The notes under the pieces were generated by a model. The model searched no databases. It was not told where the DNA came from and worked only from the letters and a program-made list of their open reading frames with translations. The position numbers and the translations under genes are program-made. Positions 10,346 through 15,574 of a DNA stretch of 64,000 nt are shown here, piece after piece. This stretch comes from Eutreptiella sp. 'Long Island Sound 2002' (lineage: Eukaryota; Protista; Euglenida), in NCBI GenBank assembly GCA_964036045.1, contig OZ038378.1, positions 13,950,001 through 14,014,000 on the forward strand. Reading direction: 5' to 3'. Numbering within the stretch: the first letter of the stretch is position 1; each line of letters starts with the position of its first letter.

Positions 10346-11721
10346 TGTGTATACTGTTGCAACAGGAAATGAGGGAATTCTAAAGAGCCCAGCTTGTGGC
10401 CTTTTTGTTTGCAGGTGCCCCCCTTGCCAGCCTGCAACCTGTGTAAAGGGAGAGAGCCTGACCTAGCTGTTAGAGGCTTATGGCAGGTGTAGTGTGGCGC
10501 CAGCTTCTGACAAATGAAACCCACAATTCTGCTTTTCATATGACAAGGCAAGGCAATGCAAGATGCACCACACTGTGCTGCAACTTGATCGGGTGAACAA
10601 TGGCAAAAGCCACTGACCGTGTGCTGAACGTAAAATGCAGATAGCAACGTTTTACGGACTCTTTTAATGACAACGTTGTAGCAAGCGCTTTGCTGCAGTG
10701 CCAACACTTGAAACCTCAATTATATATTGCAACACTTGGCCACAAACCATGGGCACACTGGGCTGGGCACAGGCAGGTCATGGTTTGGAGCATGCTCTTC
10801 ATCTGCCAGCAATCGGAGTCCTTCAGCTTTGGTGCATCTGCCCATCAGGGTCATGGGTGTCACAATCCTTTGCATTTGCACAAAAGACCAAATGTGAACG
10901 ACCAGCAGTGAAATGCAGGCGAAGAGGCCACGAAATCTGAGGAGGGGGCCCCTAAAGTGGAGTGCGACCAACAGCAGCATGTGCTTGCAAGCTTTCCAGC
11001 GCACGTGCTTGCCATGGAGCACAATTCATCTTGGCAGCAGGGTCAGCCTGCGTACATCCAATGGATAGAAGCAGCGGACAATCTACTGCCATGGGGTCGG
11101 CTCCTCATCTACCAGCACTTTTTCACCTTGCATATCACCTGAAGGGCATAGGTATGCAGACTTGCTGCAGAAACAAAAAAAAAGTCTTGTAGATAGTGTG
11201 CCCATCCGTACCGCCTCCCATGCCATGTCTCCTGCGATGCTGCCGCCAACAGGCCCAAACATCCGATGCGGAGGTGGGAGGGAAAAGACCTTCAAAGGAA
11301 CGACAAGAAGAAAATTGAATCACAAGAGAGCCTGACGCCGAGGGCAACATGTGTTGTGGTCATGCAGCACTGTGGTCGTTCTCAATCTGCCGCACATCTC
11401 AATCAGGAAAATAGAGCAACAGAGGGCTGAGAACCAGCGATGGGACAGGCTGGAGATGTACGGGCTGGAGGCACCAGGCAGCGGTCGGCATCATGTGCCA
11501 CACAGCTTTCTGGCTTTCAGACATGGACTGCAACAGTCCAACACCAGGATATGGAGCTCTCTATTTCATGCAGGCTGGCAGGTTGCCGTAACTGCCATCG
11601 ACTCGATATCAAGGGAAGCATCCTGCAGACAATCCACCCCAAGACATATGTATTGCTAGGGTATTGCTCAATGTCATGATAATATGTATGTACAAATGCC
11701 GCCTGATGCGAAGTATGGTGG

Positions 11722-11765
11722 AGACTGACACACTAACACACACACATACACATACACATACACAT
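11722..11765. repeat. (CA)n-type microsatellite
   Basis: cacactaacacacacacatacacatacacatacaca. Confidence 0.8.
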
Positions 11766-12227
11766 CGCGGCGCAAAAGCATATTCAGAGCGTGGAGGCAG
11801 GGTAATTGGAACCCACCCCTGCATTGCTCCGTCCCTGGGCATCATAGCACAAAGAACAACTACGTCCTGGTCCAGGAAGAGCTACTGCACCAAATAAGCA
11901 GCCCTCGCCAAGACCCATAGTGCTTGATGACCCATGGGCATATGCTTGCACAGGGGCCAGCATGGCCCTGCAGGGCCTTTTGGAGCACACCGTACCCAAA
12001 CAGAAGCACTCATATTGCGCATATACAATATCACATATCCATGTGACAAACTCTATGAAACCCATCACCCCTGCAGCTTACGTTCAGCCATCTTTGAAGT
12101 CTTCAGTCCTGCCGTGCACGAGGCATCTAGCTGGGCACTGCGAAATGTTGGCATGACTCGGGCAGTCTCGGATAGACTTCCAACTCTGCTACTCTCGGAT
12201 GGTCTCGGCTGGTCCCGGCCAGTTATG

Positions 12228-12980
12228 TCAACCATCGCAATGACAGTCCGTGATCACCTTGAACCTGTCGCAGTTGGGCACACAGGTCCCTGGGCAGTCT
12301 GTGCCACCCTGGGTTGGGTCGCAATCGCTGCCTGGTTTAGGTTGGCAGGTGTAGCCATCATCGCATGGCGCCGGGCCGCACTCCACTTGAGCCGTAGGAT
12401 CAGCGCAGATAATGCTCTCCTCGAACTTCGGGATGCACTTCTGAGAGGCCGAGCCGCAGCGTCCAAGGCAACGGCCGACGTCCACCACTTGGACAGTGCC
12501 ATCCGGGCCCCAGTGCTGGATGTAGTGGGGGATGCGGGCGCACTTGGGCCGCACGGGCTTGCAGTCGCACCGCGCCACAGCCTCGACCCGCACGTTGCCC
12601 ACCAGAAGCATCTTTGTCTCTGCCACGTGGCATTGGGTGGTCCAGTATTGCTCCAGGTTGTTCTGTCCCGTAGGCCACTCCTCCGGGCCACACTCCCCAC
12701 CGCACACACCCACGTTCACCTTTCTAACGTCGTCCTCGTCCACTTTGATCAAGCGGTACTTCGCCCGTACCCGACAGTCTGAACAGCCACAGTCATCAAT
12801 GACGCGGGTCGATACAGCTCCTCCGTAGGGGTTCGTCACGGTTTGCGTCTCGAAGGTCAATGGACGGCAGTAGGCAAACCCTCCTTTCCAATGGCAGTCC
12901 CCTCTGCACATCCCAACATCCACTGAGAAATCGCCCAGGTGCTTGTAGACGCTGAGTCGCGTGCAGGGATTGGGTAGAAC
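12228..12980 (-). CDS. Exon 2 of the secreted multi-cystine-knot protein (knots 2-4; spliced product 394 aa)
   Basis: Acceptor tcacgtcgcag|GTT is in phase 0 with exon 1. Three further C..V(D/N)VGxCxGxC..C..CxC repeats follow, then a TGA stop. Confidence 0.85.
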   Translation of the reverse strand, partial: VLPNPCTRLSVYKHLGDFSVDVGMCRGDCHWKGGFAYCRPLTFETQTVTNPYGGAVSTRVIDDCGCSDCRVRAKYRLIKVDEDDVRKVNVGVCGGECGPEEWPTGQNNLEQYWTTQCHVAETKMLLVGNVRVEAVARCDCKPVRPKCARIPHYIQHWGPDGTVQVVDVGRCLGRCGSASQKCIPKFEESIICADPTAQVECGPAPCDDGYTCQPKPGSDCDPTQGGTDCPGTCVPNCDRFKVITDCHCDG

Positions 12981-13534
12981 CTGCGACGTGATACGATGTT
13001 GGATGACGCTGACAACCACGGTTATGGTGTTGAAGCGTGTTGCATGGTCCATGCACAGCGACATGCAACAGCAAAAATCATGCAGAACGAAACATCACGC
13101 AAAACACAACTTCAGACGAACCAAAACGTGGTGTTTTTTTTTTGTATGGTATTCTCACCAGGCACCATGCAAATAAAGCACCCTGCAACACAAAACACCA
13201 TGCAATGCAGAGCACCAGGCCAAACAAAACGACTTTCAAGACACTAGCACCATACAAAGAGAACAGAGGGCAAAACGGAACACTGCGCAAAACAAGAAAC
13301 CACACAAAACGAGGCACCATGCGACACAAAACACCATGTCAAAACAAACACCAATGTCAACGGAAGACCACACAAAACAAATATATGCAAAACAGAACAT
13401 CATACAGCCGAAAGCCATGCAAAACAAAACACAATATATGTGTTTTGTCCGAAATGATGTTCTGTTTGTAATATAAAACACCACGTAAAACAGAGCACCA
13501 TGCCAAACAAACAAGCATGCAACGCCTACAACAC

Positions 13535-13966
13535 CTTGGGCTCGCATCGGCAGTGCCAAGCATTCCAGAACCATCCCTCAGGACATCGTTCAATGCGGTC
13601 ACAGACACATGCGCACTCTTTGACGACGGAGAGCCACGATGTCCTTCTGCTTTTTGCGTCTGTCAACTGCACAGAATCAGTCGTCACCGCTTCACATGAC
13701 TTGCGGCCCGTCTGAGCGGTAGTGAGGCAAAAGCCTTGGCATTCTCCCACGTCCACCGTCGTTTGGGTGGGGTCTTTGAGGGACCACTGCCCACGGTCGT
13801 ATTCGGCGATCTTGATAACCTTTGGCACACGGCGGCACAGCACAACAGGAACAGGGATACCAACGTCGATCTCTGCACGGTCTACCCCTGCAGTGTCCAG
13901 CCTAAGCACTTCCATGGTCTCCCCATGGGTCATCCCTATTAGCAATATCAGGACTAGAGGCCACAT
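13535..13966 (-). CDS. Exon 1 of a secreted multi-cystine-knot protein (signal peptide, knot 1, CxCxC-type linker)
   Basis: MWPLVLILLIGMTHG signal-like N-terminus; C..VDVGECQGFC..C..ECAC motif; phase-0 donor AAG|GTGTTG at 13535/13534. Confidence 0.85.
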
Positions 13967-15574
13967 TGTGACAAGAAATAAGCAGGGTCTTCCTGTTTGC
14001 TCCTGCGAAAGGGAGACCAGTGAATGGAAGCAAATATGCCCCCAATCCCTGCAATGACACTGGTGGAAAGTACTGGTGGAAAGTAGATGAGCAGGGGTAG
14101 GCAGAGAGATGAAATCTAGCCAGCAGATGGGTTCTGCGTACCTGTGGGTGCGGCTGCTGGTGGGCTATTCCATGGTTCTCAAGACAGTCCCTTGGCCCTG
14201 GGCCTGCTGCTTTTTCTGTATGCCCGCTAGCCTCGGGGCCACGTGCCACAGCACACAGGCACCGCTGAGGTCCGTGTGCTTGGATAACAGGGGCTGTTGG
14301 CTTGGGCAGGTTCCCATGCTGGGCACATGATCGGCACCTCAAAAACTCCAGTTCCAACAAAATCTCAGTAGCACAGGGTCAGCGTACTGGCGCAAGAGCG
14401 CCGAGGGGTCTCAGCAGTGGTCTAACCCCTCACACCCATGCATAGGTTGGGGCTTCAGCATGGATATTGAGGATGCAGTGCGCATATTGGTGTGCACAAC
14501 ATGCATTCTTGTTGTATGAGCATCCTTTTGTGCAAGCATGGCCTTGTTGAGCCCCCACCTTCGTTTACACCAGACCAGTCGGTATAACATTTGCATTGCT
14601 CTTTTTTGTGAGATGGTGTTTGTTATTTTTGGGTCCTACAGGAAACTGCGTGCATTACACTGCCCCCATTTATGTTCTCTTCCAACCAGAATATGGCTCA
14701 GAAAGTCTGTTTTGCATGATTTTGTTGATGAAAACAATGTGCCCAGCAGTGATGAGGACAATTGCAGCTCTGCTAAGTCCGATGTTGAAGCTGATGTCCT
14801 CCGTGATGTTGCTTGTGCTCATGGAGAGAGAAAAATGTAACTCGTGTACAAAAAAATCGTCGAGTTGTGTAATTTTTTTGCGGCAAATGCGTGTAATTTT
14901 TTGGCGTAAGCCGTGTAAATTATGAAAAAAATTGAATTTTTTTTTGCGGTCAACGTGTGTAATTATTTTTTTTTTGGCGGTAAGTCGTGTAAATTATGAA
15001 AAAAATTGGAAAATTGAAAGAAATGCAACTTTTGCAACACATGAGCAATATGTACAGCTGCTGGTTCCGTACGGCACCCCATAGCGACCTTAACGATGGG
15101 ACGCCGAGTCCACAAAGCACATAGTACTCTGTGTGGCCACCAATTAGTTGGGACTCGGCCAATATAACAAAGTTTCACATGGTGTCATTGACACTAGGCA
15201 CAAAATCATGCCCAAGAAAAGAGTCTTGACATGGCCATGGCCAACATCCACTGTGCCAGCACTTGGAACAAAATCAGGCTCAAGATAAAGAGTCCTAACA
15301 AGGCCATGGCCAACGCTAGTGCCACCATTATAGGCCACCAAGGCACGGATATGGGGCCAATAAAATAGCATGCGTATACGCTCCACCATTGGTATACCAA
15401 ACGGGCAGAGGAAAACACAACCCACAAAACATGCACCCGCTACAAGTAGTTGCAGAATGCATGCTTGTAGATCAAGTCAGCTTTTGTGTCGCTGGACTTG
15501 GGCTTTGCACCAAGATTGGGGTTAAGCTGACAAGCGGCACGCAACTCCGCTACTAGCTGCTTGGTTAGGTCATG

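Follow-up and report, generated by a model that had tools for sequence, protein, structure and literature searches.

The 64,000-nucleotide stretch of Eutreptiella DNA analysed here (the window) carries on its minus strand a two-exon gene for a protein of 394 aa (~42 kDa). A sequence-only reading had proposed it by joining two open reading frames across a phase 0 GT-AG intron, and this model holds, since both frames, a database protein and intron-skipping RNA contigs agree on it. The spliced product is identical, residue for residue, to A0A7S4D307 of Eutreptiella gymnastica (UniProt; P0001 in UniRef), automatically named 'CTCK domain-containing protein', a name taken to come from a PROSITE rule. 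The gene and its predicted product comprise, in the direction of transcription:

14003..14004, minus strand: AG acceptor for spliced-leader (SL) trans-splicing; the body of the mature mRNA starts at 14002
13967..14002, minus strand: 5′ UTR of 36 nt (RNA contigs reach 14003; the ATG is at 13966-13964)
13535..13966, minus strand: coding part of exon 1, residues 1-144, ending in EPK followed by GT (from translation, identity to P0001 1-144 and RNA depth); encodes the signal-like peptide, a linker of ~25 aa, knot 1 and a CxCxC mini-module
13922..13966, minus strand: predicted signal peptide, residues 1-15 (MWPLVLILLIGMTHG), from hydropathy and the leaders of homologues
13607..13837, minus strand: predicted cystine knot 1 (C44, C76xGxC80, C91, C118xC120)
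13544..13603, minus strand: four-Cys mini-module after knot 1 (C122, C128, C139, C141; C-x10-C-x-C), conserved in all paralogs
12981..13534, minus strand: intron of 554 nt, GT-AG, phase 0; RNA joint 12978->13533 (cut +2)
12228..12980, minus strand: coding part of exon 2, preceded by AG, residues 145-394 (250 aa, starting VLP) and a TGA stop, covered by RNA contigs; encodes knots 2, 3 and 4, its translation being P0001 residues 145-394
12783..12965, minus strand: predicted cystine knot 2 (C150, C169xGxC173, C182, C208xC210)
12561..12776, minus strand: predicted cystine knot 3 (C213, C237xGxC241, C261, C282xC284), beginning two residues past C6 of knot 2
12237..12542, minus strand: predicted cystine knot 4 (C291, C315xGxC319, C326, C336...C381, C390xC392), of the 8-Cys type also seen in Pinhead's last knot
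12273..12404, minus strand: Cys-rich insert in knot 4, residues 337-380, with six extra Cys
12000..12227, minus strand: start of a long 3′ UTR (RNA contigs run without a break between 12978 and 12000)

RNA contigs of four runs (two cultures and two estuary metatranscriptomes) skip the intron exactly, with zero depth inside it, and all four show the same EPK/VLP joint, as the sequence-only reading had predicted; the locus is thus both transcribed and spliced. The assembler word depth of these contigs is modest. One of them, X1, extends 1,422 nt past 12000, and no minus-strand ORF of at least 110 aa is found from 10720 to 12200. A degenerate 17-bp tandem repeat is present in the intron at 13162-13228.

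Upstream, the RNA contigs stop at 14003 with a loose end, GAAAAAAAAT on the plus strand, which in the mRNA sense reads ATTTTTTTTC followed by G and matches the spliced leader of Euglena gracilis at its 3′ end (PMC6242988). The 5′ end of the mRNA bears a euglenid spliced-leader tail (ATTTTTTTTCG), for which the earlier reading had advised a search, and a second homologous transcript, L007, also carries the SL. The tail on the mRNA indicates a nuclear euglenid gene and not animal contamination. That the locus stems from animal contamination or from a chimera in the assembly, a concern already raised with the first reading, could be suspected because every distant relative with a name comes from an animal. 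It is ruled out by the spliced leader, and what probability one might still grant it is negligible: the gene lies within a contig of ~1.02 Mb, five paralogous loci are found in the same assembly, the identical transcript occurs in MMETSP Eutreptiella cultures as well as in the estuary metatranscriptomes, and no animal protein exceeds ~30% identity. The gene is therefore a nuclear, expressed, SL trans-spliced gene of two exons from the marine euglenid Eutreptiella.

It is a member of a family. The same assembly includes at least five full-length paralogs, and two more homologues were found in transcriptomes, one of them from a euglenid. The paralogs are spread over five contigs or more, show 40-60% identity and have spliceosomal introns at differing positions. 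All knot cysteines are kept at this level of identity, arguing that the repeat pattern is not due to chance. Pattern scans with three full-length sequences retrieved no relative from IMG/VR or JGI metagenome contigs, and there was no other named protist among the homologue matches. Individual members show peculiarities: L001/P0008 may have a long N-terminal extension, and the homologue P0011 has an odd number of Cys and a CC pair. No in-frame GT-AG intron was found at the knot-3 CxGxC of L001, where the interruption is possibly a non-conventional intron.

The encoded protein is ordered as a signal-like peptide, a short linker, knot 1, the four-Cys mini-module and knots 2, 3 and 4, the linkers between knots 2-4 being of only 2 and 6 residues. 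Residues 1-15 are predicted to form a signal peptide, as judged by eye and by hydropathy (mean Kyte-Doolittle value of 2.49 over residues 2-12), in line with the first reading, and hydrophobic leaders also begin the homologues P0007, P0011, P0017 and P0147. Plastid targeting seems unlikely, the segment that follows being acidic. The four repeats of C1...CxGxC...C4...C5xC6 claimed from the sequence are seen in the alignment, where C1, G, C2, G, C3, C4, C5 and C6 are invariant in all four and V(D/N)VG precedes C2. The same signature is invariant over 10 euglenid domains, and over 20 domains when Pinhead and viral ones are included. With this spacing, C2-x-G-x-C3 and C5-x-C6 would close an 8-residue ring, threaded by C1 and C4, which would give the 1-4, 2-5, 3-6 disulfide topology of the growth-factor fold. 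The whole protein contains 36 Cys, an even count, with neither a CC dipeptide nor an N-x-S/T sequon in its 394 aa. The insert in knot 4 is variable in L001, L002, L008 and P0147 and missing from P0011, P0012 and the L006 paralog, P0011 and P0012 having minimal forms of knot 4 with 8 Cys.

The predicted fold supports the assignment of the repeats. In AlphaFold models (whole chain, pLDDT 78.8, with residues 41-394 mostly at 80-94; knots 2-3 alone, pLDDT 85.4 and pTM 0.64) each knot appears as two long antiparallel beta-hairpin fingers, and the mini-module as a small hairpin with strands at 132-135 and 140-143. The knot 4 insert is at pLDDT 63-75, and the whole-chain pTM of 0.46 means low confidence in the inter-domain geometry, on which the intramolecular pseudo-dimers suggested in the first reading would depend. 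The best 50 matches of a Foldseek search against the PDB were all cystine-knot cytokines, with DAN, Norrin and gremlin as best structural matches, and an Atlas shape search returned knot families only; the predicted fold of each repeat thus matches cystine-knot growth factors almost exclusively. As the first reading had proposed, each repeat carries the growth-factor cystine-knot signature, as judged by the ring spacing together with the two-finger predicted fold.

At the sequence level, in contrast, known knot families were hardly detected. The Pfam families to which the sequence-only reading had pointed gave nothing: neither exon product matched PF00007, PF03045, PF00019, PF00341 or PF03128 at E<=10, nor did any of nine homologues match a knot family at E<=1. 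A phmmer search with the whole protein found no relative among PDB sequences; a first domain profile (A2) gave non-significant DKK/Frizzled matches only, and a broadened one (A5) marginal matches to TGF-beta2 (E 0.005) and sclerostin (0.036). The differences from each family are substantial. The classical CTCK pattern includes a CC pair, and the typical extra cysteines, this pair among them, are missing from the euglenid protein, which does not match PF00007. The likeness to the DAN family is structural only, without a PF03045 match, and members of the DAN/Norrin/gremlin/sclerostin/CTCK/glycoprotein-hormone branch have one knot per chain and form dimers, whereas four knots per chain are found here. 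TGF-beta/BMP/activin ligands have a prodomain, a furin-type RxxR in front of one C-terminal 7-Cys knot, a seventh (inter-chain) Cys and a PF00019 match, all missing here; the sole RxxR, R124-R127, lies within the mini-module. The CxCxC...C-x10-CxC segment after knot 1, spanning residues 118-141, had been compared to the CXCXC/BR3P repeats of VEGF-C/PVF proteins. The segment is present, with knot 1 followed by C-x-C-x-C...C-x10-C-x-C, and Atlas PDGF/CXCXC clusters align to residues 37-144. The likeness is less convincing, with TM of only 0.25-0.37, no match to PF00341 or PF03128, and a single unit instead of a repeat array.

The closest animal relative detected was Pinhead (Pnhd; im:7138239), known from fishes, amphibians, Ciona and arthropods. 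An exhaustive hmmsearch of 1.84 billion proteins gave 18 matches, including fish Pinhead (E 2.5e-4) and an ostracod homologue (1e-3); proteins of the TGF-beta, DAN, mucin and hormone types were all absent at E<=1e-3. A mixed profile recovered homologues from crab, Timema and Hyalella, and Atlas features also point to Pinhead. When the euglenid family was aligned to Pinhead by hhalign, a probability of 98%, E ~1e-13 and a score of 104 were obtained over 126-156 collinear columns, four times the score of any reversed or shuffled control (16-24). Both proteins are secreted (by prediction for the euglenid one) and composed almost only of tandem cystine knots; they share C1-x-R-(V/I)-P, then (V/I)D(V/I)G-x-C2-x-G-x-C3, then C5-x-C6, as well as an 8-Cys last knot, and neither has a Pfam family. 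Arthropod Pinhead members are likewise auto-named 'CTCK domain-containing'. Pinhead differs by having three knots instead of four, no knot 1 with its CxCxC mini-module, a ~50-aa insert in its own first knot and, in vertebrates, a middle knot that has lost C3 and C6. The registers differ between methods, hmmsearch placing knot 3/4 on Pinhead A/B and hhalign knots 2-4 on A-C. In the domain tree each knot position forms its own clade, the deep nodes lack resolution, and euglenid and Pinhead knots are not paired one to one.

An even better profile match was a giant-virus (GVMAG) group (score 119-121, probability 98.6%, compared to 92-104 for Pinhead). It consists of three-knot proteins of marine giant viruses (P0019 and P0150; IMG/VR GVMAG contigs L009-L013). 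P0019 alone found no match in IMG/VR, but the P0019 family alignment did. The genes for the viral proteins sit on gene-dense contigs of 27% GC and on GVMAG contigs, the longest of which reaches 140 kb, and a permease neighbouring a viral knot gene is closest to a Nucleocytoviricota cluster. They have the same knot subtype and the CxC-x2-C junction, at which the next knot directly follows the previous one. They differ from the euglenid protein by an N-terminal PAN-like segment, by a ~190-aa domain inserted within the middle knot, by their three knots and by their intronless, AT-rich genes. Taken together, these profile comparisons indicate detectable homology of the euglenid family with both animal Pinhead and the giant-virus family, the three sharing one knot subtype. 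The sequence-only reading had ranked the gene as a candidate for an undescribed system; this has to be narrowed, given the homology to both families and the CTCK name already assigned by UniProt. The cystine-knot fold itself is known; its occurrence in a euglenid is unexpected, since knots of this type are commonly seen as inventions of animals.

We consider it likely that this nuclear, SL trans-spliced gene of Eutreptiella codes for a secreted four-knot protein, as predicted, of the Pinhead/giant-virus knot subtype, with an extracellular, non-enzymatic binding role. We infer a secreted binding or ligand protein without enzymatic activity. Folding would take place in the ER, every one of the 36 cysteines finding its partner inside the chain, and the protein would then be exported to act outside the cell as a rigid binder, either a ligand or a ligand trap. 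Contacts would be made through its eight fingers, and the tandem arrangement of knots would stand in for the dimer that single-knot cytokines need. To our knowledge, euglenids have no BMP/Admp pathway, and Pinhead's BMP, Admp and FGF partners are not known from them; the partner of the euglenid protein can thus not be the animal BMP/Admp system. In animals, Pinhead is characterised by linkage to admp and an embryonic signalling role, works with BMP/Admp/FGF signalling and, in zebrafish, forms disulfide-linked dimers (PMC6989304, PMC8188501).

Could the likeness to Pinhead reflect only constraints common to all 8-ring knots, in a generic CTCK/DAN-like protein whose tandem arrays arose independently? 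The poorly resolved deep branches and position-specific clades of the domain tree, the discordant registers and the CTCK name would allow it, as would the preference of the structural searches for DAN, Norrin and gremlin, although no Pinhead could appear among these matches because no Pinhead structure has been solved. Nevertheless, this is improbable, as judged by the exhaustive search, where Pinhead-type and giant-virus proteins were recovered and no other knot family at E<=1e-3, by the absence of any matching Pfam knot model, by the margin of the hhalign score over its controls, and by CxR(V/I)P after C1, (V/I)D(V/I)G before C2 and the 8-Cys last knot being common with Pinhead. If the shared subtype is real, it could have reached euglenids by horizontal transfer through giant viruses, or have been donated to them, instead of being inherited from early eukaryotes, and it may serve virus-host interplay. 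The giant-virus group being the best profile match, the near-zero-linker CxC-x2-C junction common to both sides, the location of the viral genes on GVMAG contigs next to a Nucleocytoviricota-like permease and the patchy distribution are consistent with such a transfer. We regard it as possible but not the expected case: the euglenid genes have spliceosomal introns and the SL and are scattered over their contigs at 40-60% identity, from which any transfer must be old, the scanned viral and metagenome contigs encode nothing closely related to the four-knot protein, and the domain tree gives no direction.

The alternative to a binding role is a structural or adhesive one, in which the protein would belong to the coat outside the cell, to the mucilage or to the contents of mucocysts and the knots would serve as cross-linkers rather than as a diffusible ligand. 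CTCK is a stable cross-linking module in mucins and von Willebrand factor. The many paralogs, the possible long N-terminal extension of L001/P0008 and the odd Cys count and CC of P0011, which would permit inter-chain bonds, fit such a role. However, the 394-aa protein itself is small and made of knots only; with an even Cys number and no CC, it offers no cysteine that is evidently free for polymerisation. A mucin-like region rich in Ser/Thr/Pro is absent, as are glycosylation sequons, and the RNA word depth is modest. A structural function is thus rather unlikely, and a role as an extracellular binder is preferred.

Cystine-knot cytokines are central to animal cell signalling. As far as we know, the class (TGF-beta/BMP, DAN, Norrin, glycoprotein hormones, PDGF/VEGF, Pinhead) is commonly held to be specific to animals, and a full-text literature search returned no paper mentioning cystine knots together with euglenids. 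A bolder proposal, to which we give little credit at present, is that Pinhead-subtype knots are not an animal invention, having predated animals or travelled among animals, euglenids and giant viruses, and that the four knots of the Eutreptiella family make true signalling ligands, cell-cell or virus-host, with a dedicated receptor. In any case, an expressed and expanded euglenid family with giant-virus relatives provides a non-animal comparison for the origin of knot ligands, and horizontal transfer through giant viruses is raised as a possibility. It also offers a unicellular, possibly virus-host, system in which to ask what a tandem-knot protein binds without the BMP pathway. Pinhead, for which neither a solved structure nor a Pfam family exists, gains its first non-animal relatives.

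Two minus-strand ORFs in the window, 13966-13526 and 13064-12228, were joined into a single gene with the following coding parts:

13966-13535, minus strand: exon 1, 144 codons, ending in ...EPK with GT next
12980-12228, minus strand: exon 2, preceded by AG, starting with VLP..., 250 codons plus TGA stop

The sequence-only reading had proposed this two-exon, GT-AG model of 394 aa, and its translation is identical at every residue to P0001 (UniRef A0A7S4D307, Eutreptiella gymnastica, 394 aa), named 'CTCK domain-containing protein' by its source. Also in the P0001 cluster are an MMETSP/EukProt copy whose C-terminus is frameshifted and two prokaryote-style ORF calls from a 1,018,734-bp contig. 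In the public ENA gene calls the window gene appears as a pair of ORFs, of 146 and 278 aa, that run on into the intron. In P0004, the EukProt record of the MMETSP0811 translation (448 aa), the frame shifts shortly before the final CxC, so that the last knot lacks C5 and C6 and a 60-aa tail is gained; this is either an assembly error or an allele. Unlike P0004, the UniRef version agrees with the genome. A plus-strand ORF antisense over exon 2 (11934-12782, 282 aa) is a shadow ORF. The intron is rich in GTTTTG-like motifs and carries a degenerate 17-bp tandem repeat at 13162-13228.

The stretch was present in 16 public runs, with approximately the exon share of sampled words in RNA runs. We examined 12000-14300 in four RNA runs (two cultures and two estuary metatranscriptomes). 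One joint, 12978->13533 (GT..AG on the minus strand when the cut is moved by +2), was observed in all four, with zero intron depth and no sequence differences, confirming the predicted EPK|VLP junction. Both culture RNA contigs stop at 14003 and end in loose letters GAAAAAAAAT, which read in mRNA sense as ATTTTTTTTC, then G. The spliced leader (SL) of Euglena gracilis is ACTTTCTGAGTGTCTATTTTTTTTCG (PMC6242988). This comparison shows that the mRNA is SL trans-spliced at the AG 14004-14003, and the gene is therefore euglenid. An animal contaminant as its source was ruled out by the SL. One culture RNA contig (X1, 2,882 nt) extends 1,422 nt past 12000, and no sizeable minus-strand ORF was found between 10720 and 12200; a long 3' UTR is thus probable. 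If the extension is not a 3' UTR of unusual length, the contig runs on into the neighbouring transcription unit. The probable 3' UTR contains a microsatellite of ACACAT/CA type (11728-11765).

The features of the encoded protein, with C1 to C6 denoting the knot cysteines, are as follows:

Residues 1-15: hydrophobic signal-like leader, mean hydropathy 2.49 over residues 2-12
C44, C76, C80, C91, C118, C120: knot 1, from sequence
C122, C128, C139, C141: four-Cys mini-module after knot 1
C150, C169, C173, C182, C208, C210: knot 2, from sequence
C213, C237, C241, C261, C282, C284: knot 3, from sequence
C291, C315, C319, C326, C390, C392: knot 4, from sequence
Knot 4 interior: eight further Cys, the second addition

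The leader, comparable to those of homologues, is consistent with the signal peptide claimed earlier. The 36 Cys are accounted for by four repeats and two additions. C1, G, C2, G, C3, C4, C5 and C6 are invariant across ten aligned repeats from three paralogs, in keeping with the C1/C2xGxC3/C4/C5xC6 signature read from the sequence. Knot 3 starts two residues past the last Cys of knot 2, and knot 4 six residues past knot 3. The mature chain (~41.7 kDa, pI 5.75) contains neither a CC dipeptide nor an N-x-S/T sequon.

AlphaFold, given a 16-row alignment, predicted the whole chain with a mean pLDDT of 78.8 and a pTM of 0.46; residues 1-40 were disordered and the remainder, mostly at pLDDT 80-94, formed long paired strands. 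Knots 2-3 modelled alone reached pLDDT 85.4 and pTM 0.64. The best 50 Foldseek matches in the PDB were all cystine-knot cytokines, with weak E values (0.03-0.16) and probabilities of 0.91-1.00, and an Atlas shape search returned knot families only. The models thus point to the knot fold suggested by the sequence-only reading.

Paralogs were searched by tblastn and look-ups, with ORF calls from ENA assembly ERZ25074135, taken to be the assembly of the window. Full-length paralogs were found on four other contigs of that assembly (L001, L002, L006 and L008). Their intron positions differ: L002 has two GT-AG introns, L006 one and L008 at least three, and the EPK|V intron is the only one shared by the window gene and L002. 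The search for homologs also recovered further fragments or transcripts (P0007, P0010, P0014, P0015), a complete 452-aa member (P0147) and P0011, a 375-aa homologue of 40% identity. The P0011 transcript (SRR11524790, contig L007:1-1495) also begins with ATTTTTTTTCG and encodes a complete four-knot protein behind an SL. Every knot Cys is kept. The Cys-rich insert in knot 4 varies between members; P0011, P0012 and L006 lack it and retain an 8-Cys knot 4. In L001 (3844-5568, 8067-8549), an open frame of ~337 codons upstream of knot 1 (ORF call P0008, 499 aa) may be an N-terminal extension, without Pfam match. No in-frame GT-AG borders were found for the L001 intron within the knot-3 CxGxC, which may be a non-conventional euglenid intron; alternatively, L001 may be a pseudogene.

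No Pfam model matched the window protein, and no Pfam knot family matched nine homologues; the protein alone did not match PDB sequences either. A language-model feature search ranked 'Pinhead', an animal three-knot secreted protein, first (score 0.82, a lead only). An exhaustive hmmsearch of 1.84 billion representatives with the paralog profile gave 18 proteins at E<=1e-3. Thirteen, at E<=1e-10, were family members; those looked up came from ERZ25074135 or from the SRR11524790 transcript with its SL. Five weak hits made up the rest: one fish protein, whose homologues are all named pnhd, Pinhead or im:7138239, one ostracod protein and three metagenome ORFs. With hhalign, the euglenid alignment matched 15 Pinhead sequences over 156 collinear columns (probability 98%, E ~1e-13), euglenid knots 2-4 facing Pinhead knots 1-3. 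The local score was 103.6, compared to 16.5 and 17.9 for reversed alignments and at most 24.4 in forty column shuffles. Twenty knots from euglenids, Pinhead and metagenome ORFs share eight invariant positions and a C1-x-R-x-P plus (V/I)D(V/I)G context, and the last knot has 8 Cys in Pinhead as in the minimal euglenid form. The profile broadened to these knots retrieved TGF-beta2 (E 0.005), sclerostin, GDF15, Nodal/BMP2 and gremlin from PDB sequences; a mixed profile found Pinhead-like proteins of crab, stick-insect and amphipod. Some arthropod Pinhead-like proteins are auto-named CTCK, as is the euglenid entry. In a domain tree each knot position formed its own supported clade; deep nodes remained open, and the tree therefore gives no one-to-one knot pairing. 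We regard the window protein as a relative of Pinhead-type proteins from outside the animals, with four knots. Although its sequence is public and carries an automatic name, full-text literature searches turned up nothing published about euglenid cystine knots.

Metagenome ORFs P0019, P0150, P0020/27 and P0021 constitute one family with three knots of the euglenid/Pinhead subtype, in which the N-terminus is PAN-like and a ~190-aa domain interrupts the middle knot. Its loci include L003:10001-11683, L004 and L005. The contigs that carry P0019 (560 aa) are gene-dense with 27% GC, and a Nucleocytoviricota cluster is the closest one to the adjoining permease (score 0.98). Five IMG/VR giant-virus metagenome contigs (L009-L013, up to 140 kb) encode proteins 44-65% identical, matching at 5001-~6250 in each; one of the five genes adjoins PCNA and a methylase. 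The euglenid family scored 119-121 (probability 98.6%) against this group versus 92-104 against Pinhead, and both euglenid and giant-virus proteins have a CxC-x2-C junction between successive knots. To our knowledge, growth-factor-type knots had not been described in marine giant viruses.

The SL-capped, spliced mRNA encodes a disulfide-rich chain that begins with the leader and continues with four knot domains, very closely spaced. The protein presumably folds in the ER and is exported, and it would then work extracellularly as a rigid binding protein with no enzymatic activity. As far as we know, euglenids lack the BMP/Admp pathway of Pinhead, and the partner must therefore differ. Pinhead itself has been described as a BMP-like ligand forming disulfide-linked dimers (PMC6989304) and as a multi-knot Admp-binding antagonist (PMC8188501). 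The window protein may have a matrix or adhesive role, or one in virus-host interplay. Its even Cys count and lack of the extra inter-chain Cys of other knot cytokines suggest that tandem knots may replace dimerisation, as the sequence-only reading proposed. The mature part of P0011 has 31 Cys, including a CC after knot 1, and could, in contrast to the window protein, form an inter-chain disulfide.
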